DNA of 28,799 nucleotides from Macrostomum lignano (taxonomy: Eukaryota), in NCBI GenBank assembly GCA_002269645.1, contig NIVC01002557.1, forward strand, positions 1 to 28,799, given 5' to 3'. Of the stretch, positions 3,054 to 28,799 are shown in pieces; within the stretch, counting starts at the first letter, position 1; every line of letters begins with the position of its first letter. The translations under genes and the position numbers were made by a program. Below the pieces are notes generated by a model. It was not told the origin of the DNA and made no database searches. It saw only the letters and a program-made list of their open reading frames with translations.

Positions 3054-3677
3054 CGCCACATGGGGGATGGGATGCCCATTTCGATAGGAGAGAAATGGCT
3101 CACTAGATCAGGGTGGATATTTTTCTATGTCTGTGGGTTGTGGCATTGTGGGTGAGGGTGCATAGTATAAAAAAATCGTAATTGCCATTGCCACCTTGAG
3201 AAATAAATAGAGCTAGTTGTTATACTTTTCCAGAAGAATAGCTGTGAGAGAGAAGACAAGTTCAAGTATGGAGCAAGCATCAATTAATATTTGGCAAATC
3301 TTTATTGAAAAGGGGTCAAAAAGTCACTAAAACTGGTCACTGGAGCTAGTATAGGTCGAAAAAACCATTTAAATATACACAAAGCCATTTTTCAAAGCTT
3401 ATTTACATTGTTTGAGCTATTAAGCACTTACAATTTTGATACAAAAATTATGTAAATAATTTCTGAGGTCCTGATAAATGAGCGACTAAAAATTTCCAAG
3501 AAAGTCCACTTGAACGTAAAATCGCGATATCTATCAGATAAGTAAGACACCAAATTATAAGCAATGGGGCTTTTAACATTTTTCCTGAAAATCTACGCCA
3601 AAAACAAAATAATTCTAATTCAAAAATAAAAATAGTAAAATACAAAGATTTGTATATTCTATGAATCTCCTCATTCT

Positions 3678-3935
3678 CAGTGGCGTAGCCAGGAATTTTA
3701 ATTGGGGGGGGGGGAGGGGAGGTTGGCCTGGCTGGCCATGCCTTATGCCATTGCCACTTTTTCTGTGGCGCGACACACCGCGCTGAATTCGTGCCAAGGA
3801 CTAAGCCCTTCATCTAGATAGTGGGAGCCAGTCTGCACGCACAGCAGCTCCTTGAGACGCTGGAAGCCCCCTGAGCCTTCCTTGGGGTGCTGGAAGCCCT
3901 CCTGAGCCTAATTCCTTGAGATGCTGAAAGGACCT
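3678..3935. mobile_element. Possible non-autonomous DNA transposon (MITE-like) fragment
   Basis: Starts CAGTGGCGTAGCCAGG followed by a long G run, a terminus type common in small invertebrate DNA elements. It is GC-rich against AT-rich flanks and has about 2.5 internal degenerate 30-33-bp repeats (ccttgagacgctggaagccccctgagcc) at 3849-3930. No matching right TIR or TSD was found. Confidence 0.35.
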
Positions 3936-4440
3936 GGGTGATCTGTTCAGTTGCAGGGAGGACACAAGGAGCCCGTTTCTAATGAATTCCGGCTCTACTG
4001 TCTAGCGAATATTTGCGAATAAAAAGAAGAAATAATCACGAAGCTTATTATGAGTTCAACAAGCAGAATATTCATATGCATGTAAATTTTTCTCTGATTA
4101 TTTATTTGTTGAAAATTTATTTTAGATAACGCACAGGACTGAATTAATGGAGCCGGAAGATGCAGCTTTCGCTTTTTTAAATAAGCCAGTCATAAAAAAG
4201 CCAGATTATTCACAAGTAAAAAACTACAAGCCTGCAACTGCAAACACTCCAAAGAGCACATAATACAGTGGAATTGCTAGCGTAAATGAACAGCTGTTAA
4301 AAGATCCGTGTCAGTTTAAATATAGTGAATAAATTAATAAATAAAAGCTACTTGTGCGCGGCAGAGCTACACGTACATGTAACTCAGGGGAATCACAGAA
4401 TCTGAACTGAAACAATTTGAAGAAACCTGATTGCTGTCGG

Positions 4441-6867: not shown

Positions 6868-6890
6868 TGAAAAGTGAGTCAACGCTTAGC

Positions 6891-7300
6891 CCTGCATTAG
6901 CGGGGCATTAATTTTAATTATTCCGCTTCTGCACAGGTCAGCTTGACTCGCCAGTGTTTGCCTGTTTCTGCCGGCCCTTGCACCAGAAACACCAGATTCT
7001 CAGTCTCGCTCACTATGAAGCCAGCACACTGTACTGTCTCTCTCAATTGCTGTCCACTTTCTCTGTTTTGACGGGATTGGTAGACGGCCCATGCTTTAGT
7101 TTTTGGAGTTTCTCTCTCGCATCGCGCATTCTGCCTCCATATCTCTTACCTCTACCTCTCTCACCTTAGCAACCAGACCGCAATGCGTGGTTCTGCTCCG
7201 GACTCCGCCCCTCCTCATGCAGCGACCAATTCAGACCGCCCGCTCCCTCCGCACTCTCTCTCTCTGAGTTCTTTCCTCTGCCCCTCAACTACACAATCTC
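6891..7300 (-). promoter_or_regulatory. Putative TTLL7 promoter, non-coding first exon and 5-prime UTR intron
   Basis: GC boxes (ccgccc at about 7205 and 7236) and CCAAT (7226-7230). Minus-strand donor consensus GAG|GTAAGA at 7150/7149, with an alternative AAG|GTGAGA at 7165/7164. Acceptor ctaatgcag| at 6892/6891, 24 nt before the ATG. Inferred from motifs only. Confidence 0.4.
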
Positions 7301-8325
7301 TGAGTACAACAAATTGCCTCATTCAATAGACTGCTTCACCTCATTATCAGCCTAGCTGTCGCCCTCCCATTCTCGCTCAATGACAGAGGCCGCTACACAT
7401 TCAAAGAATAGTGGCGTGATGATCACGAAGCTGAACGGTCAGACTTTGCAAGACCATGATGCTTCTAGCTGTCTCGGTTCATTCTCAGGCTAGGAAGGAA
7501 TCTAGTTAGCAAAGCCAGAGCTCTGGTATTCACCTACATTGAAGCCAATAGAAAATGAGCATTTTCAACCCCTGCCAGAAAATTTGCAATCATGCCGGCC
7601 AGATCTATAGCACAGAACTGCGTGGGCTTTTGCGTAGGACCTAGACGGAAGCTTATGGACTGTGGCCCAAGATCTACATAAAAAATTCATGCACTGTAGG
7701 CCGATTTGCGTGGGCTAACGTCACTCACAAGAAAATTACAAACCTATGTATGCTACTCATCGCAACTATTTTGCTAGTAGTACAAGAAAAATGAAAAAGG
7801 TGCCGAAGATCTCTGTCCCCAATGACTCAATGAGGCACGAGAATTCGCCGTAAATCCCATCATACGAGCTATGTCTACCTTCCGCTTGACGCTCCGAAGC
7901 TCCGAAGCTCAAGTGCATATAGACTTTGATTTGGACAGAAAAATTACTGTGGCTTAAAGAATTTTTAAATAAACAGGTTGCTGAATTTAAACCAAAAAAC
8001 GCCGATACTGACACAAGTCCTTGTTGTTTCTACACTTTGTTTCGTATTTATCTTTCTTATTCCATCAGGTTTATTTAATCGCTGCAAAAGCAATCCCGCG
8101 GTTAAAAAATAATAATTGCTTACAAAAAGCTCTCGCTGTTTTGTTGCATTAGCTGAGAAAACTGCTTCGTGGTTCAGAGATGTGTTTTCAAATAAAAGCT
8201 AACTATGACTGATCTGAGAAATAAAGCAGTTCAAATAAAGCAGTTCAATGTGTTCGCAGTGGGCTGAGTCAGTCAGAGACTATCATTGCCAACAGTCGAA
8301 GCGAAGCAGTCGTTGCTTGATCAAC

Positions 8326-9449
8326 TCAGACGCCCAGAGCATTGGTCGGAGAGACCAGACGGCAAACCAGGGCCACCACAGCCACTGCAGCAAAGGCGAT
8401 TGACAGCGCGAATGGCCTGGCTGTCTGATCTGCCGTGGAGGACGCCGATTCTTTCTCTTTACTTGATGGGGTGAACGAGTCCAGAGACGGCGGGGGTGGC
8501 GCAGGCGACGGCGGCAATTCAATCTTTACCGGCGGCAGAGGCGGGCTGTTGGAGTTGTCTTTAAGGTTGCACAGATCGGTGTCACATGTTTTGCAGTTCT
8601 GCCAGTTCAGTTTGTCACAGTGCAGTTGGCACCCGACCAGGAAGTGCTAAAGTAGAGTGCGCGGAGTTCTGTAGTAGAATACTGGATGAATATCGTGAAA
8701 AAAGCTTGAAAAACTTGAAAGGAGAAAATAAACGAGGGGAAAGGAATCTCTGAATTATTGCTACTGCCAAGTACAATTTTCAAAAAAGTACTCTTCGATA
8801 AACCCCAACTCATTTCTATGATCCCTTTTCTATGAACCATCTCAGTCTCACCTCTGCATCGGTCGGGTTGGGGCTGGAGATGCATGGCATATCTTTCGGG
8901 CACAAGACAGGCACAGGAAGCGGGCCGATTGTAGTATTGAGGGAGTTGTAGCATAGCAGATACTTCGTAACGTTTGACTTGAGCTCGTTGCCATACTCGA
9001 CGTTGCAGTGGTCCTTAAAGCACTCGCGGCACTCAACGCTGTTTTTATCGAATTTTCCGCACTTGCCACAGCCGAAGTACATCTCCTACGAGTATAAGCA
9101 TAAATTATGGTGATTCAGCTGTAGTCTCTTGAATTTTAACTCTGAAATAAATTCATGCAGCGCGACTCACGAAAAATCCTGGATTTGTTTCCCAATTTAT
9201 CCTGCGCTTCTCAACGCAAGCGTTTCCAACTGCCTGGCATGTGTGGGCCTCTGCAGGAAAGTCAACACCGATAGTCGAGTGGTTGCCTGTGTAGCACGTG
9301 AGGGCTTCAGCAGTCTGAGTCGCGGCTGTGGGTTGGCAAATATATTTATATAAATTTCGCTTCAAATATTGCAATAGAAATCGAGTTCGTATCTGCATCA
9401 TTTACTCACCAAGCAGAACTCCAAGCAGCAGATACAGAAGCGTCAACAT
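8326..9449 (-). CDS. Secreted, membrane-anchored protein with two Ly6/uPAR (three-finger)-like 8-Cys domains, 249 aa, 4 exons (copy 1)
   Basis: Exons 9449-9410, 9325-9171, 9085-8852 and 8646-8326 (750 nt) are joined by GT-AG introns of 84, 85 and 205 nt with matching phases (1, 0, 0). Product: signal peptide MLTLLYLLLGVLLAATQTAEA; domain 1 LTCY...FGCGKC...CRECFKDHCN; domain 2 LLCY...VGCQLHC...CKTCDTDLCN; three N-glycosylation sequons (NHS, NVT, NTT); Pro/Ser stalk; hydrophobic tail FALSIAFAAVAVVALVC. Confidence 0.88.
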
Positions 9450-9974
9450 CTTCAAAGGCGAGTGAAAAACGAGACCCAGTGATCAAAGCCACACTAAAGC
9501 AGAGAATGAGATGATTGAGTTCTCTAAGCTTCAGTAATTGAAAGTTCTTATGCTTTGCTCTTTCCACTTACTGTTAGGAGGCGAGAGACTGAATTTTCGC
9601 GTGGGAAATCGGTAGGATTGGCCATAGACATGCTGCTCAGGCTTTTGTTTTTCTGTTTTGCGCGAGAGATGCCTCTACGATCGATAGAAAGGAAAATATT
9701 TTCTAGGGCACTGAGAATGCTATCATGGGCGAGACTATCTATTACTGAGAGAGACACGCATTTGCAGAGGCACCCACGGACCGTTGGCGCTACTGGCATA
9801 AGCCATGCATGGTGCCTTTGCAATACTTTTCTGTGTGTTGGAACCGGGCATCTGCATGGTCTAGAAGTGGCTGCAATAGACAGTGGGATGCAATTCAAAC
9901 CGGTCATTTTTTATTTCTTCACATTTTAAAAATGGCTCTACAAAATACAGATTATAAAAGTACAAGGCAACTAC

Positions 9975-10130
9975 TGGCGGATCCAGGGGTTCAAGAGGGT
10001 CGGCTGAGTCAAGAGAGGCAACGACATTCACAGGGCGCGTTTCAGAGCCTGGGCGCGGATGTAGGCGGCACTGCCTGCAGTGTCCGGGGCGCCGGCATCA
10101 GCCACGAAATGCCGAGTGCACCTGTCTTTT
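9975..10130. mobile_element. Possible MITE-like terminus or fragment (also at about 20869-21024)
   Basis: GGCGGATCCAGGGG terminus-like motif followed by a GC-rich tract and tandem arrays. No partner TIR was found. Confidence 0.25.
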
Positions 10131-10133
10131 TTA

Positions 10134-10489
10134 GCAATCCCCCGTAAGCCTCGACATCTCAGCGACTCCCTCGTGAGCACTGAAATCTCAGTAATTCCCC
10201 AGTAAGCCTTGACATCTCAGCAATTCCCCTAGTAAGCACCCCCAAATAGCAAGCACCCCAGACAGCAAGCATCCCCCTGATAGCAAGCATCCCCCTGATA
10301 GCAAGCATCCCCCTGATAGCAAGCATCCCCTTGATAGCAAGCATCCCCCAGATAGCAAGCATCCCCCTCGATAGCAAGCATCCCCCCTCTATAGCAAGCA
10401 TCCCCCAGATAAGCAGGCATCCACCAGATAGCAAGCATCCACCAGATAGCAAGCATCCCCCAGATAGCAAGCATCCCCCAGATAGCAAG
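10134..10489. repeat. Compound minisatellite: about 3.5 degenerate ~30-bp units, then about 13.5 x 18-bp units (gatagcaagcatccccca)
   Basis: Directly visible tandem units. The 18-bp array spans about 10246-10489. Confidence 0.95.
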
Positions 10490-10692
10490 TAGCTAGTGCA
10501 ACAATTTCCTCAGCTAGTGCTAATTCCTTTCTCAGCTAGCGCTTCAGAGACTGATTGAGCTGGCTTGTTGACGATGGAGAATCCATGGCGCAGGCCAACA
10601 CGGAGAAACTCCGCATTCAAATCGCAGGCTCCCAGGCTGATGACGAGAGTGACAAGGTCGAGGCCAGCGGCTGGATTGGCGACTGAGATGTC

Positions 10693-10782
10693 GGCTGAGA
10701 CTGAGACTGTCCGAGTGAGGCTGAGACTGAGACTGTCCGAGTGAGGCTGAGACTGAGACTGTCCGAGTGATACTGAGACTGT
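10693..10782. repeat. 26-bp tandem repeat x3 (ggctgagactgagactgtccgagtga)
   Basis: Units at 10693, 10719 and 10745, plus a degenerate partial unit. Confidence 0.95.
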
Positions 10783-12299
10783 TCTCTGCTATGAGAATGA
10801 GTGAAGCTGACGTGTTCAAAACAGCCAGAGTTTGCCATGATGCTGTCAGTGTTGCATCCTGCTTTCAGGCGCTATTGAACCAAGGAGTGCTGACACTGCC
10901 CTCAATTAGAAGGTTGATTTCGATCTCTAGTCCTCTTTCTGTGGACCCTGGTGTCTGACGAGCGGTACATTCACCTGCAAAGTAAGGAACTGCCGATCGC
11001 AGAGTGCAGCGTGAATCTAATACTCGATGAGATTCATCCTAACATAACATGCGTATTGAATCTTCCACTGGAAGAGTGGACTCATTCACCAAGAAAGAAT
11101 TTATTTTAATAGAAGTAAAATAACTGCAATAATGATGCAATTAGTTTAATTTCCAAGTCCATATACTAATTTGAACTCAAAATTAGTCGTTGCTCAGCTT
11201 TAAACAGAAAAAGCACTGCGGGAATGGAATTCAATGGGAATTCCTATACTCCTATAATCCTATACGCGTATTTTCAACTCGGCCCGGTTATGTTAAAGTC
11301 CAAAAAAGTCTTCAATTCCATACGAGTGTACATGTAAGCTAGTACATTTCTACGAGTATGCTTGAACAGTGCTTCGAAAGCCTTGAAGTACTGATAGTGA
11401 GCAGCCCTGGAAAGGGAAGGGAAGGAAGAGGAGCAGAGAGGAGTAGAAAAGTAAGGGGGGATTGTATCGAGCTGTTGAGACGAGCTTGCACTTTGTAAAC
11501 CGTTAACTGGGACCCAAGCAGAAGCTGGAACTGTGCCTTCACTGCCCGCGGATGGCTTCCCGACTCCTCCAATCCCAACCCCTCAGCCCCGACCCCCGCT
11601 TCAACTTGCGATACGCTTGTGGTCACAAGTTGCCAAAAAGTCACGCAACTCTCTCACTATCTTACTAAATAATCTTTCTGACCTGATTATTTGCAAAACA
11701 GGCCGCAGAATACTGTAATTCTTAACCCATGGGTATCTGGGTTTGGGTTGGCGGTTTTCAATGTTGCTGAGTTATCTGAGTATATATTCTATGAATATGA
11801 TTAAGTTAACAGAAAAGAATGAACCGTCTCGAGTGTGCGGAAAGAAGCAAATACTCGTAAATTTTGGTCAAATTTCTAATTTCAATGGATGTTAACAAAA
11901 TGTGGGAGTGCTACTAACTTTGCTCGAAAAATCTGCGCATTTGGAATACTCTGTCACGACTCACGAGTGAAGGCAGTGGTAATAGTAATATAGTATGGAG
12001 GTCAGGCTGGCAAAGGTGAGCCACATATTCAGATTTTAGCTTCGCCAGCAATTATGTAACACAGCGCTGGCCAAGCCCAAAACGATTGCGTAGATCGTAC
12101 CAATGCTATGTATAAGCTTTGTAGCGAGGCCTGTGACTAACAAAAGACAGACATGAATGGCAGGCTTGTGCAATGCATTGCATGATTACAATACAATATG
12201 TTAAACCCACTAACCAGAAAAGCCTGGGGATCAAGCAGATGAAGTTTGAATCCGAGTGTACAGGCTGACAGAGGAAAGCTCTTATGCGACCTTGGCGCC

Positions 12300-12845
12300 A
12301 GCCAATAGCAGCTGGGCGGCCGCACATTTCGTGATCAGTGTACGCACAACCCGCTGTACACTCTGGAATGAACACACTCGCTCATTCCTCTCTTGTTACC
12401 CACCCGCCCTTCATTTAAGACCGCACACGGCCTGCCCCATAGCCTTGCATTCAGTTCTTCCCTTCCTCAGTCTGCCGCGAGCCAGGGAAGTTTGCGGAAC
12501 CGGTTTGGCTCTTTGACCGAGAGGAAGGCGAGGAAAGTTACAAGCTTCTTGACCGCGAAGTGAGCTGAAGGCTCAAGGTAATCGATTCTGTTTTTCGAAT
12601 TTTCAGCTTCAATCTTTTTATTTGTAAGCTTTAAGATTTGTAATGCATTAATACTGGGCCTAAGAATCAGCAACCGTTTTTTGTTATTTCATCAGAATTA
12701 ATAGCAGTTTGAGTGACCAGTCCGACACGAACGGAACAAAAACTGACTGAGCTTTCGATCAGCTAAATGGGGTACTTGTGGAGTGAACTCCACTTGCGCA
12801 CTCCAAAGACTCAAATGCCAATGCTTTTATAAACTGTCACCTCAG
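12300..12845 (+). promoter_or_regulatory. Putative PPP1R3 promoter, non-coding exon 1 (about 12451-12577) and 268-nt 5-prime UTR intron (12578-12845)
   Basis: CCAAT, CAGCTG and GGGCGG cluster at 12303-12320, GC box at about 12403-12409, and initiator-like TCAGTT at 12451. The ATG-free segment ends in donor AAG|GTAATC, followed by an AT-rich intron and acceptor cacctcag|. The same is present at 23193-23738. Confidence 0.55.
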
Positions 12846-12859
12846 CTGAGCGAGCCCGG

Positions 12860-12913
12860 ATGCGCTGGACTCGCCTTCGGACTGCCACCCCGGCCCTGCC
12901 GGCACCCCGGTGA
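12860..12913 (+). CDS. Upstream ORF (17 aa, MRWTRLRTATPALPAPR) in the PPP1R3 leader
   Basis: First ATG after the predicted acceptor. Weak context (C at -3 and +4). Stop lies 14 nt before the main ATG. Translation is not demonstrated. The copy is at 23753-23806. Confidence 0.4.
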   Translation: MRWTRLRTATPALPAPR

Positions 12914-12927
12914 GAACCCAGGTTGGC

Positions 12928-13975
12928 ATGGACGAGGGCATTTCGGAGCCCGCGCTGCCGCAGGCCAGGGACAGCAGCGGCTGCCCGGCTGGAGACTGCG
13001 GCTCCAGCAGCGAGGGCTACGCCACATCGCAGGACAGCCTCGTGGCCTCCTCGGAGACGCTCAGCTTTGCCAGCGAGGACGCGCCGAGCGATGAGGCACA
13101 GAAGCTGGACAGTCTGAGTCTGGCGCTGCAGGAGCTGCGCTACGAGAAGCTTCCCCCACCGCAGCCGCTGGCCATTCAGACTCAACGCCAGAAGCCGGTC
13201 GGTGCTAGCAAGCAGCTGCAGCAGCAGCGTCGCTCCTCTTCCATGAAGTCCCAGAAGACGCCGCCGGGCACGCCGAACCAGATGAAGAAGGTCGTCCGCT
13301 TTGCCGATGCGTTCGGGCTCGACCTGGCTTACGTGAAGCACGTTTTCGATACCGAGAACCCGCCGGTGATCCCACCGCAGGCTACTCGGGACCTTGATTT
13401 GCCCGAAGCTACAGCTGCCGCGATCTCCCGTCTCCGGTGAGCCGCGAATTCTGTGTTCCCAATTATTTCATTTCTATAACTCGCTTTCTAATAAACTGCA
13501 TTGAAGCAGGCCGGAGCCTCTTGAGCGACGCCTGTTCAGTAGCCCATGCTTCGCTCAGCCCGGTGGCTGCGCCAGCTTCATGTCGCGCGTGCTGGCCCAG
13601 CGGGTGGTGCTGGAGCGGGCGAGCGCTACGCAGCCCAGCGGTCGCATTCACGGCCTCGTGCGCGTGGCCAACCTGGGCTTCGAGAAGTCCGTGATGGCTC
13701 ACGCTACCTTCGATGGCTGGCGCAGCTGCATCGACGTGCCCGCCGTCTATGTCGAGGGCTCCAGCACCGGCGCCACGGACCAGTTTTCATTCACACTGCC
13801 GCTGCCGCAGAGTTTCGGCGTGGGCGACCGGGTCTTCCTCTGCGTTCGCTACTGCATCGGCGGAGAGACCTTCTGGGACAACAACTTCGGCGAGAACTAC
13901 GCCTTCGACTGCTTCGCTGTCAACACCGTCAGCGGCGGCGGCACCACCGGGCCCGCCTGCTCGCGTTTTTTGTGA
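12928..13975 (+). CDS. PPP1R3: Protein phosphatase 1 glycogen-targeting regulatory subunit (PPP1R3/CBM21 family), 324 aa, 2 coding exons (copy 1)
   Basis: Exons 12928-13436 and 13510-13975, with a 73-nt GTGAGC...GCAG phase-2 intron that joins two ORF-track ORFs in frame (975 nt). PP1-binding RVxF motif KKVVRFADAFGLDL. CBM21 motifs GLVRVANLGFEKSV...TFDGW and FWDNNFGENY. The paralogue letter cannot be assigned. Confidence 0.95.
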
Positions 13976-15192
13976 GCTGCAGGCAGGGCTCAAGCTCAAG
14001 TGACCAACCCTCCCGAATCCCATCCCTAGTGCCCTAACAGATTCAGAATCTCCTCATGCGAAATATGTCGCTGTGATGTTAAATGCGATGATTTCGTTTC
14101 GAGTCGAATCTTACTTGAATTTCTCCCCCACCCTCCATATTATTTCCCTCTTCTGCTCCATAAAAATGTCTGGCCCTTGTAAAATTAATTTCCCGAGTTG
14201 TCCTTCAGCCCTGGTGAATGACTTTCAGTATCACGAGTTTTAGCTTTACAGGCTGAGGCGCTCGCAGCAGCCACAGAGCATCGCAGCTCTGAGCTACTCG
14301 ATGCATCCTCATTGTTCCGGTCAGCTTCCTATAGTTTCCCGCCCCAGTCTTGCCATTGGTGTGACCTCATTTAACCTCGTCTGTACGAAGCCATCAACGC
14401 GTATAACTCTTCATTAACACTCAGTGTGGCTCTTGCGAATAGTTCAATGTTTACCAATGATGCAGGACGAAACGGACTGCAACTTGTTTACCCCCCAAGT
14501 GTTGGCCAACTGCTCTTTAAATTGAATTTTTCGGCCTTAGGCTGAGTCCTATTAGATTTTCTGTCTACAAAATACAAATAGTTTTTTTTACTGTTGTTCT
14601 TTCATGATTTTTGCTCTTGCCTCAAGCAGCAGAGCGTCGCTCATCGCTCCTCATGTTGGGCTCGATATTGGCCCGCACCGCTTAGCTCCCGATTCGCTCA
14701 AATTATCTAGCCCCTCATCTTTTCTCATTCTGCCTAAAACAGTGTATTCTGAGCATAGCAACTAGGGTTAGGGTCTCTATTTTTAATAGTCGCTTGCTCG
14801 AGGCTGCCACGGCTTCAATGACATCGAGTTCGGAAGCTTTATTTAGTTCTGAAACTCGTTTCGAAATTGACTCCATAATTTTCCCTGTAGACAAATCAGT
14901 ATGGTTCAGCTCTCAAGAAGCAACTTGGTACGCATTTTAGGGAGCTCAGCTTATTCATTTTTGTACTAGAAATGTAGAAATTAGGCATTAGTAGGTGCGC
15001 ACCTAGGTTGGCTCATTGGACTGTGCCCAGCGCTCCCTTCATTGCGTGAAAATACACAGAATAGCCTAGCTGTGTTGCTTGCCGAGTATTTTGCTAAGCC
15101 TCCGCGAGCAAAAATCGAAAACGCTTCCAAGCGAACAAGTTGTTGCCTTGCTAAATTGCTTTGTTCTTCAACACTGTCCCTGACTTTATCAC

Positions 15193-15990
15193 TTTCACTG
15201 ACTTTCTGCCTCCTCCACCGACTCTTGCCTTCTTCACCGACTCTTGCCTTCTTCACCGACTCTTGCCTTCTTCACCGACTCTTTGCCTCCTTCACCGACT
15301 CTTGCCTTCTTCACCGACTCTTTGCCTCCTTCACCGACTCTTGCCTTCTTCACCGACTCTTTGCCTCCTTCACCGACTCTTGGCCTCCCTCACCGACTCT
15401 TGCCTTCTTCACCGACTCTTTGCCTCCTTCACCGACTTTTTACCTTCTTCACCGACTCTTGCCTTCTTCACCGACTCTTGCCTTCTTCACCGACTCTTGG
15501 CCACCTTCACCGACTCTTGGCCTCCTTCACCGACTCTTGCCTTCTTCACTGACTTTCTGCCTCCTCCACCGACTCTTGCCTTCTTCACCGACTCTTTGCC
15601 TCCTTCACCGACTTTTTACCTTCTTCACCGACTCTTGCCTTCTTCACCGACTCTTGCCTTCTTCACCGACTTTTTACCTTCTTCACCGACTCTTGCCTTC
15701 TTCACTGACTTTCTGCCTCCTCCACCGACTCTTGCCTTCTTCACCGACTCTTGCCTTCTTCACCGACTTTTTACCTTCTTCACCGACTCTTGCCTTCTTC
15801 ACCGACTCTTGCCTTCTTCACCGACTCTTGCCTTCTTCACCGACTCTTTGCCTCCTTCACCGACTCTTGCCTTCTTCACCGACTTTTTACCTTCTTCACC
15901 GACTCTTGCCTTCTTCAGCGACTCTTGCCTTCTTCACCGACTCTTGCCTTCTTCACCGACTCTTTGCCTCCTTCACCGACTCTTGGCCAC
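15193..15990. repeat. 19/20-bp pyrimidine-rich minisatellite, about 40 units (ccttcttcaccgactcttg and variants)
   Basis: Directly visible. It decays into diverged units to about 16080 and generates the spurious 277-347 aa ORFs. Confidence 0.98.
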
Positions 15991-16910
15991 TTAGCCAACT
16001 TCAACGACTCTTAGTCAACTTTACCACCAACTCTTGGCCTCTGTCACCAACTTTTAACCACCCCAATAGCCTCATCAACTCATGAGGAGGTTGACTTGTT
16101 CTCACTTTTCATATAACTCCTTGGCGCTGCAGTGATCTCTAGTCACTTCTTTGACAACTCACTGATAGGAGCGTATGTTAAATATTATATTTTAATCCTT
16201 AGGTTTATGTCACCTTAACACCCTTAGAATCTTCGAAAATTTCCCTCAGAAACGCTAATGACTGTTTTCCCATTCAGGATCCGCTGAAAGCAGAATCGTT
16301 AATTCGAATAATGTTAGATTCGTTCCAAAGAAAAAATCCATCAATTCTGGTCTTGAAGTCGCAGATAAAACCAAAGAGAGCTGCAAAACTGCAGCGGCTG
16401 CTTGCTGCTTGCGATCTCTTATAGACGGCTTAAAGAGCTCTTAAAATGCTAAATGTATGTACAGTCGAGCCGTCTCAGCTACTGCAAACTGATCACTCGC
16501 ATAAGAGGCACTTCGCTTACATTCCTAAGCCATGTGTAAACTTAGAAATGAGAAAAAGCTACAGAAATAAAAATGCTGCAATAAGAGATACAAACAAAGG
16601 GAAATAACTCAAAGCGGGCTCGTCAGCACCTCACTCAAGATGCACCAAAATACGCATGAAAGCTAGTGAACAAACTGAGGAGAATAGGCTTGCAGGCTCA
16701 ACTGCACAGTCATTCCTCAACAGCTAATAACACGCTAATAGCAGAATGGTAAACTAAAGAAAGTTTCCGTGCATATTTACATGCATATACATTTATACAC
16801 TTACTTTCCCTGTACTTAATCTATGAGCGGCGTGAAGCTTTGGCATTTGTGGTGTAAATTATTTCGCCTCGAAGATGCATTCCTCAGCCTGCAGGAAATG
16901 CACAACCGTA

Positions 16911-17774
16911 TCACGGGGTCCTGAGGCACCGCGTCAACAACTCCGCGAGACAGTTTCGAAGTCTATTGAGAACGCCATTCACACCTTCACCGGCCTTGAC
17001 GCTGAATTCCTCCCTCCCGAGTCCTTGAGCCTCCACGTTTGCCGTCTGGTTGCGGGAGGACGCAGCTACAGTTACTGCCTTCTGAATCTTGGAATCCGAG
17101 ACGCTTATCCCGCCTTCCTGATTCACAATCACAAAGCTGTTCTCATTGTCCGCTTCATCACTGACAGGAGTCTTCACTGTCTCGTAGACATCAGCCGCAG
17201 GTGGCAGTGCCACGGCCAAGACGGTTTGCCCCGACATCCGGTCTGAATCACTGCAGCTCATCTCGGCGGTAGTGCCACCCGCTGCGGGAGTTGCATAGCT
17301 GGTTGGCTTGCTCACACCACTGCAGCCGCTGCTGCAGATGGTGATGCAGATGGAATGCTGGCTGGTTCCTTCGCGACTGTTGGACGCCACCCGAGCTGAC
17401 TGGCTGGCTGCCAAAGAAGAAAGCTCGGCCTCTACCGATGCGGTCCTGTAGCCACTGCTGCCGTGACTGCGCCCTGCGGTTGAGGCCGTCCTAGAGGTGC
17501 TGCAGAGCGGCAGGTAGGTCCAGGATGACTGGTGCAGCCGTCTGGGCCTCTGCTGCGGCTGCCGCTTACGGAGCAGTAGGCGGGATTTCTGAATGTCGTA
17601 GCGGACGATGCCGACCGATTTCCAAGTTGATGTTGAAGCTGAGGTCTTTGCCTTGTGGCGCGTCGGTGACCGGCTTTTAATCGGCATGTCCGCCCTCTGC
17701 TTCACTGCTGCTGGCATTAGCGGAGATGCTGTGCGCACTGAGCTGCACCGCTGCTCTGATCGAACGAAGCTTCT
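16911..17774 (-). pseudogene. 5-prime-truncated copy of orphan Ser/Thr/Ala-rich ORF (gene X, copy 1)
   Basis: Open from the duplication junction to TGA at 16913-16911. It lacks the ATG and first codons present in copy 2 (MSS). It is a GC-rich block with sharp AT-rich flanks and could still be translated from the internal ATG (MPAAVKQ). No recognisable domain. Confidence 0.55.
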
Positions 17775-18956
17775 CTTACCTCTACCTCTCTCACCTTAGC
17801 AACCAGACCGCAATGCGTGGTTCTGCTCCGGACTCCGCCCCTCCTCATGCAGCGACCAATTCAGACCGCCCGCTCCCTCCGCACTCTCTCTCTCTGAGTT
17901 CTTTCCTCTGCCCCTCAACTACACAATCTCTGAGTACAACAAATTGCCTCATTCAATAGACTGCTTCACCTCATTATCAGCCTAGCTGTCGCCCTCCCAT
18001 TCTCGCTCAATGACAGAGGCCGCTACACATTCAAAGAATAGTGGCGTGATGATCACGAAGCTGAACGGTCAGACTTTGCAAGACCATGATGCTTCTAGCT
18101 GTCTCGGTTCATTCTCAGGCTAGGAAGGAATCTAGTTAGCAAAGCCAGAGCTCTGGTATTCACCTACATTGAAGCCAATAGAAAATGAGCATTTTCAACC
18201 CCTGCCAGAAAATTTGCAATCATGCCGGCCAGATCTATAGCACAGAACTGCGTGGGCTTTTGCGTAGGACCTAGACGGAAGCTTATGGACTGTGGCCCAA
18301 GATCTACATAAAAAATTCATGCACTGTAGGCCGATTTGCGTGGGCTAACGTCACTCACAAGAAAATTACAAACCTATGTATGCTACTCATCGCAACTATT
18401 TTGCTAGTAGTACAAGAAAAATGAAAAAGGTGCCGAAGATCTCTGTCCCCAATGACTCAATGAGGCACGAGAATTCGCCGTAAATCCCATCATACGAGCT
18501 ATGTCTACCTTCCGCTTGACGCTCCGAAGCTCCGAAGCTCAAGTGCATATAGACTTTGATTTGGACAGAAAAATTACTGTGGCTTAAAGAATTTTTAAAT
18601 AAACAGGTTGCTGAATTTAAACCAAAAAAACGCCGATACTGACACAAGTCCTTGTTGTTTCTACACTTTGTTTCGTATTTATCTTTCTTATTCCATCAGG
18701 TTTATTTAATCGCTGCAAAAGCAATCCCGCGGTTAAAAAATAATAATTGCTTACAAAAAGCTCTCGCTGTTTTGTTGCATTAGCTGAGAAAACTGCTTCG
18801 TGGTTCAGAGATGTGTTTTCAAATAAAAGCTAACTATGACTGATCTGAGAAATAAAGCAGTTCAAATAAAGCAGTTCAATGTGTTCGCAGTGGGCTGAGT
18901 CAGTCAGAGACTATCATTGCCAACAGTCGAAGCGAAGCAGTCGTTGCTTGATCAAC

Positions 18957-20080
18957 TCAGACGCCCAGAGCATTGGTCGGAGAGACCAGACGGCAAACCA
19001 GGGCCACCACAGCCACTGCAGCAAAGGCGATTGACAGCGCGAATGGCCTGGCTGTCTGATCTGCCGTGGAGGACGCCGATTCTTTCTCTTTACTTGATGG
19101 GGTGAACGAGTCCAGAGACGGCGGGGGTGGCGCAGGCGACGGCGGCAATTCAATCTTTACCGGCGGCAGAGGCGGGCTGTTGGAGTTGTCTTTAAGGTTG
19201 CACAGATCGGTGTCACATGTTTTGCAGTTCTGCCAGTTCAGTTTGTCACAGTGCAGTTGGCACCCGACCAGGAAGTGCTAAAGTAGAGTGCGCGGAGTTC
19301 TGTAGTAGAATACTGGATGAATATCGTGAAAAAAGCTTGAAAAACTTGAAAGGAGAAAATAAACGAGGGGAAAGGAATCTCTGAATTATTGCTACTGCCA
19401 AGTACAATTTTCAAAAAAGTACTCTTCGATAAACCCCAACTCATTTCTATGATCCCTTTTCTATGAACCATCTCAGTCTCACCTCTGCATCGGTCGGGTT
19501 GGGGCTGGAGATGCATGGCATATCTTTCGGGCACAAGACAGGCACAGGAAGCGGGCCGATTGTAGTATTGAGGGAGTTGTAGCATAGCAGATACTTCGTA
19601 ACGTTTGACTTGAGCTCGTTGCCATACTCGACGTTGCAGTGGTCCTTAAAGCACTCGCGGCACTCAACGCTGTTTTTATCGAATTTTCCGCACTTGCCAC
19701 AGCCGAAGTACATCTCCTACGAGTATAAGCATAAATTATGGTGATTCAGCTGTAGTCTCTTGAATTTTAACTCTGAAATAAATTCATGCAGCGCGACTCA
19801 CGAAAAATCCTGGATTTGTTTCCCAATTTATCCTGCGCTTCTCAACGCAAGCGTTTCCAACTGCCTGGCATGTGTGGGCCTCTGCAGGAAAGTCAACACC
19901 GATAGTCGAGTGGTTGCCTGTGTAGCACGTGAGGGCTTCAGCAGTCTGAGTCGCGGCTGTGGGTTGGCAAATATATTTATATAAATTTCGCTTCAAATAT
20001 TGCAATAGAAATCGAGTTCGTATCTGCATCATTTACTCACCAAGCAGAACTCCAAGCAGCAGATACAGAAGCGTCAACAT
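18957..20080 (-). CDS. Two-domain Ly6/three-finger-like membrane-anchored protein (copy 2)
   Basis: Exons 20080-20041, 19956-19802, 19716-19483 and 19277-18957. No difference from copy 1 was seen. Confidence 0.88.
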
Positions 20081-20350
20081 CTTCAAAGGCGAGTGAAAAA
20101 CGAGACCCAGTGATCAAAGCCACACTAAAGCAGAGAATGAGATGATTGAGTTCTCTAAGCTTCAGTAATTGAAAGTTCTTATGCTTTGCTCTTTCCACTT
20201 ACTGTTAGGAGGCGAGAGACTGAATTTTCGCGTGGGAAATCGGTAGGATTGGCCATAGACATGCTGCTCAGGCTTTTGTTTTTCTGTTTTGCGCGAGAGA
20301 TGCCTCTACGATCGATAGAAAGGAAAATATTTTCTAGGGCACTGAGAATG

Positions 20351-20613
20351 ATATATTCCTGCACGGTCACGAGTGCGGGAATGACATCTGCACGAGTGCG
20401 CGCTAGCGCACGAGTGCACGATGTCCTTCACGCACGAGTGAACGTGAAGGAATTCCATTGTCGGATGATTCATCGTGCAGGAATGCACAAAACCGTGCAG
20501 GAATGCATTTCTGCGCCTAATGCTTTTTCAGTGAGATTTTACCATAGACATCCATTCCTGCACGCAAAAGAGTGCAAGAATCCCATTCTTGCATGGAAAA
20601 TCAGCCGACAATG
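20351..20613. other. 263-bp repeat-rich, self-complementary segment present only in copy 2
   Basis: Copy 1 reads gagAATGctatc (9714-9725). Copy 2 reads gagAATG-[259 bp]-AATGctatc. The offset between copies jumps from 10631 to 10894. Confidence 0.95.
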
Positions 20614-21027
20614 CTATCATGGGCGAGACTATCTATTACTGAGAGAGACACGCATTTGCAGAGGCACCCACGGACCGTTGGCGCTACTGGCATAAGCCAT
20701 GCATGGTGCCTTTGCAATACTTTTCTGTGTGTTGGAACCGGGCATCTGCATGGTCTAGAAGTGGCTGCAATAGACAGTGGGATGCAATTCAAACCGGTCA
20801 TTTTTTATTTCTTCACATTTTAAAAATGGCTCTACAAAATACAGATTATAAAAGTACAAGGCAACTACTGGCGGATCCAGGGGTTCAAGAGGGTCGGCTG
20901 AGTCAAGAGAGGCAACGACATTCACAGGGCGCGTTTCAGAGCCTGGGCGCGGATGTAGGCGGCACTGCCTGCAGTGTCCGGGGCGCCGGCATCAGCCACG
21001 AAATGCCGAGTGCACCTGTCTTTTTTA

Positions 21028-21383
21028 GCAATCCCCCGTAAGCCTCGACATCTCAGCGACTCCCTCGTGAGCACTGAAATCTCAGTAATTCCCCAGTAAG
21101 CCTTGACATCTCAGCAATTCCCCTAGTAAGCACCCCCCAAATAGCAAGCACCCCAGACAGCAAGCATCCCCCTGATAGCAAGCATCCCCCTGATAGCAAG
21201 CATCCCCCTGATAGCAAGCATCCCCTTGATAGCAAGCATCCCCCAGATAGCAAGCATCCCCCTCGATAGCAAGCATCCCCCTCTATAGCAAGCATCCCCC
21301 AGATAAGCAGGCATCCACCAGATAGCAAGCATCCACCAGATAGCAAGCATCCCCCAGATAGCAAGCATCCCCCAGATAGCAAG
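21028..21383. repeat. Compound ~30-bp/18-bp minisatellite (copy 2)
   Basis: Matches 10134-10489 except for two compensating C-run indels. Confidence 0.95.
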
Positions 21384-21586
21384 TAGCTAGTGCAACAATT
21401 TCCTCAGCTAGTGCTAATTCCTTTCTCAGCTAGCGCTTCAGAGACTGATTGAGCTGGCTTGTTGACGATGGAGAATCCATGGCGCAGGCCAACACGGAGA
21501 AACTCCGCATTCAAATCGCAGGCTCCCAGGCTGATGACGAGAGTGACAAGGTCGAGGCCAGCGGCTGGATTGGCGACTGAGATGTC

Positions 21587-21676
21587 GGCTGAGACTGAGA
21601 CTGTCCGAGTGAGGCTGAGACTGAGACTGTCCGAGTGAGGCTGAGACTGAGACTGTCCGAGTGATACTGAGACTGT
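21587..21676. repeat. 26-bp tandem repeat x3 (copy 2)
   Basis: Matches 10693-10782. Confidence 0.95.
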
Positions 21677-23820
21677 TCTCTGCTATGAGAATGAGTGAAG
21701 CTGACGTGTTCAAAACAGCCAGAGTTTGCCATGATGCTGTCAGTGTTGCATCCTGCTTTCAGGCGCTATTGAACCAAGGAGTGCTGACACTGCCCTCAAT
21801 TAGAAGGTTGATTTCGATCTCTAGTCCTCTTTCTGTGGACCCTGGTGTCTGACGAGCGGTACATTCACCTGCAAAGTAAGGAACTGCCGATCGCAGAGTG
21901 CAGCGTGAATCTAATACTCGATGAGATTCATCCTAACATAACATGCGTATTGAATCTTCCACTGGAAGAGTGGACTCATTCACCAAGAAAGAATTTATTT
22001 TAATAGAAGTAAAATAACTGCAATAATGATGCAATTAGTTTAATTTCCAAGTCCATATACTAATTTGAACTCAAAATTAGTCGTTGCTCAGCTTTAAACA
22101 GAAAAAGCACTGCGGGAATGGAATTCAATGGGAATTCCTATACTCCTATAATCCTATACGCGTATTTTCAACTCGGCCCGGTTATGTTAAAGTCCAAAAA
22201 AGTCTTCAATTCCATACGAGTGTACATGTAAGCTAGTACATTTCTACGAGTATGCTTGAACAGTGCTTCGAAAGCCTTGAAGTACTGATAGTGAGCAGCC
22301 CTGGAAAGGGAAGGGAAGGAAGAGGAGCAGAGAGGAGTAGAAAAGTAAGGGGGATTGTATCGAGCTGTTGAGACGAGCTTGCACTTTGTAAACCGTTAAC
22401 TGGGACCCAAGCAGAAGCTGGAACTGTGCCTTCACTGCCCGCGGATGGCTTCCCGACTCCTCCAATCCCAACCCCTCAGCCCCGACCCCCGCTTCAACTT
22501 GCGATACGCTTGTGGTCACAAGTTGCCAAAAAGTCACGCAACTCTCTCACTATCTTACTAAATAATCTTTCTGACCTGATTATTTGCAAAACAGGCCGCA
22601 GAATACTGTAATTCTTAACCCATGGGTATCTGGGTTTGGGTTGGCGGTTTTCAATGTTGCTGAGTTATCTGAGTATATATTCTATGAATATGATTAAGTT
22701 AACAGAAAAGAATGAACCGTCTCGAGTGTGCGGAAAGAAGCAAATACTCGTAAATTTTGGTCAAATTTCTAATTTCAATGGATGTTAACAAAATGTGGGA
22801 GTGCTACTAACTTTGCTCGAAAAATCTGCGCATTTGGAATACTCTGTCACGACTCACGAGTGAAGGCAGTGGTAATAGTAATATAGTATGGAGGTCAGGC
22901 TGGCAAAGGTGAGCCACATATTCAGATTTTAGCTTCGCCAGCAATTATGTAACACAGCGCTGGCCAAGCCCAAAACGATTGCGTAGATCGTACCAATGCT
23001 ATGTATAAGCTTTGTAGCGAGGCCTGTGACTAACAAAAGACAGACATGAATGGCAGGCTTGTGCAATGCATTGCATGATTACAATACAATATGTTAAACC
23101 CACTAACCAGAAAAGCCTGGGGATCAAGCAGATGAAGTTTGAATCCGAGTGTACAGGCTGACAGAGGAAAGCTCTTATGCGACCTTGGCGCCAGCCAATA
23201 GCAGCTGGGCGGCCGCACATTTCGTGATCAGTGTACGCACAACCCGCTGTACACTCTGGAATGAACACACTCGCTCATTCCTCTCTTGTTACCCACCCGC
23301 CCTTCATTTAAGACCGCACACGGCCTGCCCCATAGCCTTGCATTCAGTTCTTCCCTTCCTCAGTCTGCCGCGAGCCAGGGAAGTTTGCGGAACCGGTTTG
23401 GCTCTTTGACCGAGAGGAAGGCGAGGAAAGTTACAAGCTTCTTGACCGCGAAGTGAGCTGAAGGCTCAAGGTAATCGATTCTGTTTTTCGAATTTTCAGC
23501 TTCAATCTTTTTATTTGTAAGCTTTAAGATTTGTAATGCATTAATACTGGGCCTAAGAATCAGCAACCGTTTTTTGTTATTTCATCAGAATTAATAGCAG
23601 TTTGAGTGACCAGTCCGACACGAACGGAACAAAAACTGACTGAGCTTTCGATCAGCTAAATGGGGTACTTGTGGAGTGAACTCCACTTGCGCACTCCAAA
23701 GACTCAAATGCCAATGCTTTTATAAACTGTCACCTCAGCTGAGCGAGCCCGGATGCGCTGGACTCGCCTTCGGACTGCCACCCCGGCCCTGCCGGCACCC
23801 CGGTGAGAACCCAGGTTGGC

Positions 23821-24868
23821 ATGGACGAGGGCATTTCGGAGCCCGCGCTGCCGCAGGCCAGGGACAGCAGCGGCTGCCCGGCTGGAGACTGCGGCTCCAG
23901 CAGCGAGGGCTACGCCACATCGCAGGACAGCCTCGTGGCCTCCTCGGAGACGCTCAGCTTTGCCAGCGAGGACGCGCCGAGCGATGAGGCACAGAAGCTG
24001 GACAGTCTGAGTCTGGCGCTGCAGGAGCTGCGCTACGAGAAGCTTCCCCCACCGCAGCCGCTGGCCATTCAGACTCAACGCCAGAAGCCGGTCGGTGCTA
24101 GCAAGCAGCTGCAGCAGCAGCGTCGCTCCTCTTCCATGAAGTCCCAGAAGACGCCGCCGGGCACGCCGAACCAGATGAAGAAGGTCGTCCGCTTTGCCGA
24201 TGCGTTCGGGCTCGACCTGGCTTACGTGAAGCACGTTTTCGATACCGAGAACCCGCCGGTGATCCCACCGCAGGCTACTCGGGACCTTGATTTGCCCGAA
24301 GCTACAGCTGCCGCGATCTCCCGTCTCCGGTGAGCCGCGAATTCTGTGTTCCCAATTATTTCATTTCTATAACTCGCTTTCTAATAAACTGCATTGAAGC
24401 AGGCCGGAGCCTCTTGAGCGACGCCTGTTCAGTAGCCCATGCTTCGCTCAGCCCGGTGGCTGCGCCAGCTTCATGTCGCGCGTGCTGGCCCAGCGGGTGG
24501 TGCTGGAGCGGGCGAGCGCTACGCAGCCCAGCGGTCGCATTCACGGCCTCGTGCGCGTGGCCAACCTGGGCTTCGAGAAGTCCGTGATGGCTCACGCTAC
24601 CTTCGATGGCTGGCGCAGCTGCATCGACGTGCCCGCCGTCTATGTCGAGGGCTCCAGCACCGGCGCCACGGACCAGTTTTCATTCACACTGCCGCTGCCG
24701 CAGAGTTTCGGCGTGGGCGACCGGGTCTTCCTCTGCGTTCGCTACTGCATCGGCGGAGAGACCTTCTGGGACAACAACTTCGGCGAGAACTACGCCTTCG
24801 ACTGCTTCGCTGTCAACACCGTCAGCGGCGGCGGCACCACCGGGCCCGCCTGCTCGCGTTTTTTGTGA
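23821..24868 (+). CDS. PPP1R3: PP1 glycogen-targeting subunit, PPP1R3/CBM21 family (copy 2)
   Basis: Exons 23821-24329 and 24403-24868. The translation is identical to copy 1. Confidence 0.95.
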
Positions 24869-26085
24869 GCTGCAGGCAGGGCTCAAGCTCAAGTGACCAA
24901 CCCTCCCGAATCCCATCCCTAGTGCCCTAACAGATTCAGAATCTCCTCATGCGAAATATGTCGCTGTGATGTTAAATGCGATGATTTCGTTTCGAGTCGA
25001 ATCTTACTTGAATTTCTCCCCCACCCTCCATATTATTTCCCTCTTCTGCTCCATAAAAATGTCTGGCCCTTGTAAAATTAATTTCCCGAGTTGTCCTTCA
25101 GCCCTGGTGAATGACTTTCAGTATCACGAGTTTTAGCTTTACAGGCTGAGGCGCTCGCAGCAGCCACAGAGCATCGCAGCTCTGAGCTACTCGATGCATC
25201 CTCATTGTTCCGGTCAGCTTCCTATAGTTTCCCGCCCCAGTCTTGCCATTGGTGTGACCTCATTTAACCTCGTCTGTACGAAGCCATCAACGCGTATAAC
25301 TCTTCATTAACACTCAGTGTGGCTCTTGCGAATAGTTCAATGTTTACCAATGATGCAGGACGAAACGGACTGCAACTTGTTTACCCCCCAAGTGTTGGCC
25401 AACTGCTCTTTAAATTGAATTTTTCGGCCTTAGGCTGAGTCCTATTAGATTTTCTGTCTACAAAATACAAATAGTTTTTTTTACTGTTGTTCTTTCATGA
25501 TTTTTGCTCTTGCCTCAAGCAGCAGAGCGTCGCTCATCGCTCCTCATGTTGGGCTCGATATTGGCCCGCACCGCTTAGCTCCCGATTCGCTCAAATTATC
25601 TAGCCCCTCATCTTTTCTCATTCTGCCTAAAACAGTGTATTCTGAGCATAGCAACTAGGGTTAGGGTCTCTATTTTTAATAGTCGCTTGCTCGAGGCTGC
25701 CACGGCTTCAATGACATCGAGTTCGGAAGCTTTATTTAGTTCTGAAACTCGTTTCGAAATTGACTCCATAATTTTCCCTGTAGACAAATCAGTATGGTTC
25801 AGCTCTCAAGAAGCAACTTGGTACGCATTTTAGGGAGCTCAGCTTATTCATTTTTGTACTAGAAATGTAGAAATTAGGCATTAGTAGGTGCGCACCTAGG
25901 TTGGCTCATTGGACTGTGCCCAGCGCTCCCTTCATTGCGTGAAAATACACAGAATAGCCTAGCTGTGTTGCTTGCCGAGTATTTTGCTAAGCCTCCGCGA
26001 GCAAAAATCGAAAACGCTTCCAAGCGAACAAGTTGTTGCCTTGCTAAATTGCTTTGTTCTTCAACACTGTCCCTGACTTTATCAC

Positions 26086-26883
26086 TTTCACTGACTTTCT
26101 GCCTCCTCCACCGACTCTTGCCTTCTTCACCGACTCTTGCCTTCTTCACCGACTCTTGCCTTCTTCACCGACTCTTTGCCTCCTTCACCGACTCTTGCCT
26201 TCTTCACCGACTCTTTGCCTCCTTCACCGACTCTTGCCTTCTTCACCGACTCTTTGCCTCCTTCACCGACTCTTGGCCTCCCTCACCGACTCTTGCCTTC
26301 TTCACCGACTCTTTGCCTCCTTCACCGACTTTTTACCTTCTTCACCGACTCTTGCCTTCTTCACCGACTCTTGCCTTCTTCACCGACTCTTGGCCACCTT
26401 CACCGACTCTTGGCCTCCTTCACCGACTCTTGCCTTCTTCACTGACTTTCTGCCTCCTCCACCGACTCTTGCCTTCTTCACCGACTCTTTGCCTCCTTCA
26501 CCGACTTTTTACCTTCTTCACCGACTCTTGCCTTCTTCACCGACTCTTGCCTTCTTCACCGACTTTTTACCTTCTTCACCGACTCTTGCCTTCTTCACTG
26601 ACTTTCTGCCTCCTCCACCGACTCTTGCCTTCTTCACCGACTCTTGCCTTCTTCACCGACTTTTTACCTTCTTCACCGACTCTTGCCTTCTTCACCGACT
26701 CTTGCCTTCTTCACCGACTCTTGCCTTCTTCACCGACTCTTTGCCTCCTTCACCGACTCTTGCCTTCTTCACCGACTTTTTACCTTCTTCACCGACTCTT
26801 GCCTTCTTCAGCGACTCTTGCCTTCTTCACCGACTCTTGCCTTCTTCACCGACTCTTTGCCTCCTTCACCGACTCTTGGCCAC
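26086..26883. repeat. 19/20-bp minisatellite (copy 2)
   Basis: Same length as 15193-15990, and the ORF-track translations across it are identical. Confidence 0.98.
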
Positions 26884-27803
26884 TTAGCCAACTTCAACGA
26901 CTCTTAGTCAACTTTACCACCAACTCTTGGCCTCTGTCACCAACTTTTAACCACCCCAATAGCCTCATCAACTCATGAGGAGGTTGACTTGTTCTCACTT
27001 TTCATATAACTCCTTGGCGCTGCAGTGATCTCTAGTCACTTCTTTGACAACTCACTGATAGGAGCGTATGTTAAATATTATATTTTAATCCTTAGGTTTA
27101 TGTCACCTTAACACCCTTAGAATCTTCGAAAATTTCCCTCAGAAACGCTAATGACTGTTTTCCCATTCAGGATCCGCTGAAAGCAGAATCGTTAATTCGA
27201 ATAATGTTAGATTCGTTCCAAAGAAAAAATCCATCAATTTTGGTCTTGAAGTCGCAGATAAAACCAAAGAGAGCTGCAAAACTGCAGCGGCTGCTTGCTG
27301 CTTGCGATCTCTTATAGACGGCTTAAAGAGCTCTTAAAATGCTAAATGTATGTACAGTCGAGCCGTCTCAGCTACTGCAAACTGATCACTCGCATAAGAG
27401 GCACTTCGCTTACATTCCTAAGCCATGTGTAAACTTAGAAATGAGAAAAAGCTACAGAAATAAAAATGCTGCAATAAGAGATACAAACAAAGGGAAATAA
27501 CTCAAAGCGGGCTCGTCAGCACCTCACTCAAGATGCACCAAAATACGCATGAAAGCTAGTGAACAAACTGAGGAGAATAGGCTTGCAGGCTCAACTGCAC
27601 AGTCATTCCTCAACAGCTAATAACACGCTAATAGCAGAATGGTAAACTAAAGAAAGTTTCCGTGCATATTTACATGCATATACATTTATACACTTACTTT
27701 CCCTGTACTTAATCTATGAGCGGCGTGAAGCTTTGGCATTTGTGGTGTAAATTATTTCGCCTCGAAGATGCATTCCTCAGCCTGCAGGAAATGCACAACC
27801 GTA

Positions 27804-28674
27804 TCACGGGGTCCTGAGGCACCGCGTCAACAACTCCGCGAGACAGTTTCGAAGTCTATTGAGAACGCCATTCACACCTTCACCGGCCTTGACGCTGAAT
27901 TCCTCCCTCCCGAGTCCTTGAGCCTCCACGTTTGCCGTCTGGTTGCGGAGGACGCAGCTACAGTTACTGCCTTCTGAATCTTGGAATCCGAGACGCTTAT
28001 CCCGCCTTCCTGATTCACAATCACAAAGCTGTTCTCATTGTCCGCTTCATCACTGACAGGAGTCTTCACTGTCTCGTAGACATCAGCCGCAGGTGGCAGT
28101 GCCACGGCCAAGACGGTTTGCCCCGACATCCGGTCTGAATCACTGCAGCTCATCTCGGCGGTAGTGCCACCCGCTGCGGGAGTTGCATAGCTGGTTGGCT
28201 TGCTCACACCACTGCAGCCGCTGCTGCAGATGGTGATGCAGATGGAATGCTGGCTGGTTCCTTCGCGACTGTTGGACGCCACCCGAGCTGACTGGCTGGC
28301 TGCCAAAGAAGAAAGCTCGGCCTCTACCGATGCGGTCCTGTAGCCACTGCTGCCGTGACTGCGCCCTGCGGTTGAGGCGTCCTAGAGGTGCTGCAGAGCG
28401 GCAGGTAGGTCCAGGATGACTGGTGCAGCCGTCTGGGCCTCTGCTGCGGCTGCCGCTTACGGAGCAGTAGGCGGGATTTCTGAATGTCGTAGCGGACGAT
28501 GCCGACCGATTTCCAAGTTGATGTTGAAGCTGAGGTCTTTGCCTTGTGGCGCGTCGGTGACCGGCTTTTAATCGGCATGTCCGCCCTCTGCTTCACTGCT
28601 GCTGGCATTAGCGGAGATGCTGTGCGCACTGAGCTGCACCGCTGCTCTGATCGAACGAAGCTTCTTGAACTCAT
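27804..28674 (-). CDS. Orphan low-complexity protein (gene X), 290 aa if two apparent -1 frameshifts are corrected (copy 2, native 5-prime end)
   Basis: ATG at 28674 (MSSRSFVRSEQRCSSVRTAS), preceded by an in-frame TAG and an acceptor-like tttccctcag| at 28706/28705. Relative to the open copy 1, single bases are missing at about 27947 (GGG to GG) and 28378 (CC to C). Coding status rests on ORF length and composition only. Confidence 0.55.
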
Positions 28675-28799
28675 GCTCGACTATACCGCTCTGTGTAGCG
28701 GCGTGCTGAGGGAAATTGGCTTCTACTTTTAATAGACAAAAGCCAACTTCTAGCCATAGACAAGTTAACCCTTTGTATGTTCTAGAAATCGGTCTGTTT

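Follow-up and report, generated by a model that had tools for sequence, protein, structure and literature searches.

The locus analysed here raises the question of whether a tandem duplication in the flatworm Macrostomum lignano has placed a beheaded copy of an orphan gene under the control of the upstream region of TTLL7, or whether the joint between the two genes is silent, or even a product of the assembly. The window, that is, the whole stretch of DNA analysed, is the entire 28.8-kb contig NIVC01002557.1 (28,799 bp) of assembly Mlig_3_7 (GCA_002269645.1). In our best reading the duplication is real, very young and specific to one haplotype, and the chimeric junction is a by-product of it.

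A preliminary description of the window had reported that DNA upstream of TTLL7 was duplicated and set directly 5' of a first copy of the orphan gene, called gene X here, with both genes on the minus strand. This observation was correct. The window holds a direct (head-to-tail) repeat, in which 7142-9723 aligns with 17772-20354 and 9713-17774 with 20607-28665, each at 99.9% identity, and a repeat of 10.6 kb goes far beyond what chance would yield. The joint between the copies was located (Table 1), TTLL7 and gene X are both encoded on the minus strand, and TTLL7 5' flank does immediately precede a copy of gene X with neither promoter nor ATG. Apart from 3 bp of microhomology the breakpoint flanks are unrelated, and they share no long repeat. 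Read on the minus strand, the sequence across the joint runs ...GGGCGG...ATTGG...GGGCGG...GCTAAG/GTGAGAGAGGTAGAG/GTAAGAGA-AGCTTCGTTCGATCAGAGCAGCGGTGCAGCTCAGTGCGCACAGCATCTCCGCTAATGCCAGCAGCAGTGAAGCAG. What separates the two copies is 1 substitution, 6 indels of one base each, all in short homopolymer runs, and an insertion of 263 bp. This insertion (20347-20609) is found in copy 2 only and is missing from copy 1, from the sister contig and from the homeologue; it contains many internal inverted CATTCCTGCACG / CGTGCAGGAATG motifs and so may be a small non-autonomous transposon which inserted after the duplication.

Table 1. Positions of genes, duplication landmarks and candidate signals in the window
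Feature	Position	Strand	Remarks
Tandem duplication, copy 1	7142-17774		10,633 bp; ~99.9% identity to copy 2
Tandem duplication, copy 2	17772-28665		10,894 bp; extra length from 263-bp insertion
New junction	17771/17772		parental breakpoints 7141/7142 (left) and 28665/28666 (right)
Junction microhomology TCT (minus strand AGA)	17772-17774		common to both parental ends
TTLL7 orthologue	4441-6867	-	single-exon CDS, 808 aa, intact; downstream of copy 1
Proximal TTLL7 5' flank, unduplicated	6868-7141	-	274 bp
Candidate acceptor CAG	ends 6892	-	in unduplicated flank
AT-rich TATA-like AATAATTAAAATTAAT	~6905-6920	-	40-50 nt before TTLL7 ATG
CCAAT in unduplicated flank	7080	-	
Captured distal TTLL7 5' flank	17772-18130	-	equals 7142-7500
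Donor-like GAG/GTAAGA	17780/17779	-	exon/intron boundary; intron +1 to +8 = 17779-17772
Second donor-like AAG/GTGAGA	17795/17794	-	
GC boxes GGGCGG	17835-17840 and 17866-17871	-	
Inverted CCAAT	17856-17860	-	
Gene X copy 1	16911-17771	-	without promoter and codons 1-3; rest of ORF intact
Met23 ATG (MPAAVKQ)	17717	-	268-codon ORF to 16914, stop 16911-16913
Junction-spanning upstream ORF	17717-17848	-	43 codons, out of frame; stop TAA overlaps Met23 ATG
Gene X copy 2	27804-28674	-	native ATG at 28674
Native gene X 5' flank	28675-28799	-	lost from copy 1
TATA-like TATTAAAAG	28734-28726	-	in native gene X flank; 27 nt before TCAGCA
CCAAT	28719-28715	-	in native gene X flank
TCAGCA	28709-28704	-	in native gene X flank
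PPP1R3-like CBM21 gene	12928-13975	+	324 aa, one 73-nt intron; fully duplicated, second copy 23821-24868
249-aa gene	18957-20080	-	directly upstream of captured TTLL7 flank
AATAAA	18706		

Mlig_3_7 was assembled with Canu from PacBio reads of the DV1 line, which carries extra large chromosomes. M. lignano is a hidden polyploid with a recent whole-genome duplication (PMC10468722), the assembly holds 180-312 Mb in duplicated blocks, 180 Mb of it non-repetitive at 95% identity or more (PMC5730564), and purge_dups discarded 46% of the scaffolds for redundancy (PMC8629364). A rival reading, which we regard as unlikely, is that the arrangement is present in no animal and stems from a chimeric read, or from a wrongly joined layout of a redundant Canu contig with low coverage. 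An artefact would accord with the known redundancy of the assembly, with a contig of only 28.8 kb, the sole one from which the junction is known, whose two ends both fall inside the 133-kb sister contig and whose unique right flank beyond the duplication is just 134 bp, and with inter-copy differences that are mostly one-base indels in short runs, as in a weakly polished PacBio consensus. However, the joint is clean, with 3 bp of microhomology and neither Ns nor a contig end, and a random ligation chimera of two points in the same orientation and 10.6 kb apart is very improbable. A missed SMRTbell adapter gives rise to inverted repeats, not direct ones. The insertion of 263 bp in copy 2 alone also speaks against an artefact, since it means that two physically different templates were read.

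Comparison with related contigs gives the direction and the age of the event. The sister contig, NIVC01002556.1 (133 kb), is 99.9% identical across the window and lacks the duplication, its single-copy gene order being gene X, CBM21, 249-aa gene and TTLL7. A single copy is likewise present in the homeologous contig NIVC01000543.1 (identity about 95%), and the native gene X upstream region is common to both, so that the ancestral state is unduplicated. Among the loci compared, the junction 40-mer TGCTCTGATCGAACGAAGCTTCTCTTACCTCTACCTCTCT occurs in the window only. The two window copies are closer to each other than to any other copy: relative to the sister contig, 4 substitutions and 4 indels are common to both, which argues that the window is a separate haplotype or chromosome copy and that the duplication arose on it very recently. 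The sister contig has in addition an insertion of 5.4 kb (1812-7185 in the NIVC01002556.1 locus; the corresponding site in the window is 9670-9682). On its two sides the target sequence, GATCGTAGAGGC(A), is directly repeated over 12-13 bp, and the insertion is probably a transposable element unrelated to the 263-bp one. It distinguishes the sister contig as another haplotype. It is absent in both window copies, and thus the window does not consist of the sister's reads laid out twice.

Gene X is Mlig023082, a single-exon gene of 290 aa. Its reported orphan status stood up in two large protein searches, one word-indexed and one a full HMMER search of 1.8 billion representatives, neither of which returned a relative outside M. 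lignano. No paper was found in the literature by gene ID (Mlig023082; Mlig033589, which is the TTLL7 of the sister contig; Mlig006495). Gene X and its 95%-identical homeologue are separated by 8 non-synonymous and 11 synonymous differences (pN/pS 0.24) with no indel, which indicates a real, constrained coding sequence. A single-sequence AlphaFold model (pLDDT 37, low confidence) contains only a C-terminal helix, 268-288, and the rest of the protein is, at this low confidence, predicted to be disordered.

Copy 1 of gene X begins at codon 4, and the ATG AGT TCA present in copy 2 (28674-28666) is absent from it, so that it has indeed lost its ATG, as had been proposed. The same proposal held that copy 1 had lost its own acceptor, and this point calls for correction. 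To judge from its motifs, the lost flank looks more like a TATA-plus-initiator core promoter than an acceptor, as TATTAAAAG stands at a spacing of 27 nt from TCAGCA. Copy 2 carries two derived 1-bp deletions, CC to C at 28377 and GGG to GG at 27946, and the resulting frameshifts explain why the NCBI annotation of this copy is limited to a 93-aa product (27872-28153). Each deletion falls within a short run of G or C and may reflect an error in the PacBio consensus. With copy 2 frameshifted, the beheaded copy 1, the body of which is identical to the intact 290-aa gene X of the sister contig, is the only intact gene X ORF on this contig. No CDS is annotated at copy 1. This is weak evidence, because the 249-aa gene, identical in the two copies, also has an annotation in just one of them.

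The remaining content of the window was also recorded. The unannotated equivalent of the 249-aa gene in copy 1 lies at about 8326-9449, so that annotation of identical duplicates is inconsistent. ORF fragments of this gene are cysteine-rich with a hydrophobic tail at the end; enumeration of its splice models gave 601 solutions, and the approach was dropped. Upstream of it are tandem repeats of 29, 18 and 26 bp (10133-10489 and 10693-10781, again at 21027-21383 and 21587-21675). Between gene X and the CBM21 gene sits a CT-rich 19-bp minisatellite of about 41 units with a strong strand skew, equal in length in both copies (15194-15985 and 26087-26878). Outside the duplication, the start of a SMAUG-like (PHAT/SAM) gene was placed at about 533 on the minus strand by alignment to the sister contig, the gene (~1-533) running off the left end, and a 34-bp tandem repeat of 6.7 units (165-389) lies near this contig end. 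An AT-rich stretch downstream of TTLL7, at 1000-3000, has 29% GC as compared to about 50% elsewhere.

Whether the joint could have brought a promoter to gene X depends on TTLL7 and on how its 5' flank was divided by the breakpoint. The gene had been named TTLL7 in the preliminary description, and this identity is well founded: the protein has a Pfam TTL domain (6e-73), among solved structures it matches human TTLL7 (4ylr) best, with 502 bits against 361 bits for TTLL6, and the UniRef name of the homeologue protein is TTLL7. From 6868 to about 7500 the 5' flank is 95-100% identical to the homeologue, which is a coding-like level, and identity falls to 89-93% further out. This conserved block straddles the breakpoint and has promoter-like motifs on either side of it. 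Rfam and tRNA scans of the whole window gave no match, and the conserved flank is therefore no known RNA gene.

An upstream coding exon for TTLL7 was considered and rejected, as the ATG at 6867 has an in-frame stop ahead of it, and splicing from either donor to the acceptor at 6892 would give GGC TAA. Two models fit the sequence, one with a short non-coding exon 1 whose splice acceptor is the CAG at 6892, the other with a start in the proximal, unduplicated flank.

If the first model applies, TTLL7 transcription would start above 7150 and a short non-coding exon 1 would end at either of the two donors, and promoter capture may have followed, a reading that we hold only tentatively and consider somewhat unlikely. 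It is encouraged by the conservation of the captured DNA, since 7142-7500 matches the homeologue at 96-100%, while nearby intergenic DNA is at 89-93%. The donor-like site reported at 17780/17779, with the break at intron position +8, is indeed present, its intron positions +6 to +8 being the microhomology itself, and so are the GC boxes and CCAAT that had been described in the duplicated DNA (GGGCGG twice and one inverted CCAAT). These lie 25-90 nt above the two tandem GTRAGA donors, both of which fit the M. lignano donor motif GT[G/A]AG. A block which is conserved like coding DNA and combines GC boxes, a CCAAT and two donors may be a working promoter with a non-coding exon 1, and 1-2.5 kb of upstream DNA was enough for tissue-specific expression of reporters in M. 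lignano (PMC5730564). If the leader were unspliced and extended as far as about 7190, it would include several upstream ATGs, which favours either an intron or a proximal start.

The same flank also offers reasons for doubt. The unduplicated 274 bp are equally conserved and have a CCAAT of their own and a TATA-like element at a short distance from the ATG, and the TTLL7 start site could sit there. The candidate intron that ends at the 6892 CAG is 258 nt long and purine-rich, unlike the one verified intron in the window. GC boxes occur in the window at chance level (13 observed, 8.6 +/- 3.1 expected). AGGTRAGA is enriched (8 observed against 1.7 expected), with 5 of the 8 being independent after correction for the duplication.

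On the gene X side of the joint, promoter capture would require that the captured copy fires and that its RNA reads through the junction or is cryptically spliced, to give a protein that starts at Met23 under TTLL7-type control; this second step is likewise possible rather than probable. The two genes share a strand, and the in-frame MPAAVKQ start codon that had been pointed out does open an intact ORF (Table 1); Met23 is conserved in the homeologue. The ORF that passes through the joint has no ATG ahead of Met23, and a TAA stands at 17798-17796. All three CAGs named as possible acceptors were located, ending at 17751, 17738 and 17729, or 29, 42 and 51 nt from the donor, and they have no pyrimidine tracts. 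The first leaves too little distance to the donor for cis-splicing, which counts against capture in its spliced form and makes read-through the likeliest route. Of the earlier proposal that unspliced or cryptically spliced RNA makes a shortened protein, then, the intact ORF from Met23 stood and cis-splicing to the first CAG did not; the wider interpretation as a chimeric unit had the architecture right, and its functional side is a possibility. The junction-spanning upstream ORF of 43 codons is a further obstacle, relevant only if transcription starts above 17848. The GAGCAG that ends at 17751 falls on a codon boundary, and the M. lignano spliced leader, 35 nt long, ends in ATG (PMC8629364), so that a start donated by the leader would be in frame and is conceivable. 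Exact look-ups of the protein starting at Met23, of the N-terminal product from copy 2 and of two ORFs that span the junction returned no match; a control ORF from the native locus was likewise unmatched, and these negatives are thus uninformative about transcripts or reads.

Taken with the structure of the joint, these observations lead us to give about an even chance to a real, young duplication whose joint is silent or neutral. In this scheme non-homologous, microhomology-mediated joining would have generated the 10.63-kb head-to-tail duplication and its single new joint, on one haplotype or extra chromosome copy of the DV1 line which was then assembled as a short redundant contig. Of the two breakpoints, one would lie in the TTLL7 5' flank, 8 nt beyond a donor-like site, and the other after codon 3 of Mlig023082. 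By geometry alone this would leave about 0.9 kb of TTLL7 5' intergenic DNA before a gene X copy lacking promoter and ATG, and we infer that the chimeric unit most probably represents a partial duplicate that is neutral. Were the captured flank to start transcription, the likeliest product would be an unspliced leader through the junction, with translation from Met23. That the duplication segregates in M. lignano and that the captured flank transcribes gene X copy 1, which together would make a chimeric gene near its birth, is in our judgement decidedly improbable; translation would then begin at Met23 or at a spliced-leader ATG joined at the in-frame GAGCAG site.

A chimeric gene of this kind, if real, would have been caught essentially at birth, with 1 substitution in 10.6 kb between the copies, and if the frameshifts of copy 2 are also real, copy 1 would be the sole intact gene X frame on this haplotype. 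A real duplication with an expressed junction would show an orphan gene capturing a promoter, in a flatworm that is tractable to transgenesis and in a form that can be dated and tested by PCR, and would be helpful for studying how young duplicates acquire new regulation. At present the locus serves mainly as a caution that architecture resembling gene birth can appear in a small redundant contig of an assembly with hundreds of Mb of near-identical duplicates.

A chimeric unit at the breakpoint of a tandem duplication is an already well-known kind of event. Chimeric and partial genes at such breakpoints have been described for young duplicates in Drosophila and Caenorhabditis. As in these, the M. 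lignano duplication is head-to-tail with its breakpoints in or next to two genes on the same strand, the junction unites one gene's 5' portion with the other's 3' portion, and the parent loci are at the outer ends. Unlike them, the TTLL7 side supplies flank, and perhaps a very small non-coding exon with its donor, but no coding sequence, and the flatworm event is known from the sequence of a single redundant contig. The window also resembles the class of haplotigs recognised by purge_dups (PMC8629364), being a short contig that is 99.9% identical to part of a larger one in a line with four large chromosomes, but differs from a plain haplotig in lacking the 5.4-kb insertion of its sister, and the tandem duplication of 10.6 kb and the 263-bp insertion are private to it. 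With respect to spliced-leader trans-splicing in M. lignano (PMC8629364), the GAGCAG at 17751 does not fit the reported trans-acceptor motif [T/C]TNCAG, yet, as in that system, a gene without an ATG could in principle regain one from the leader at this site.
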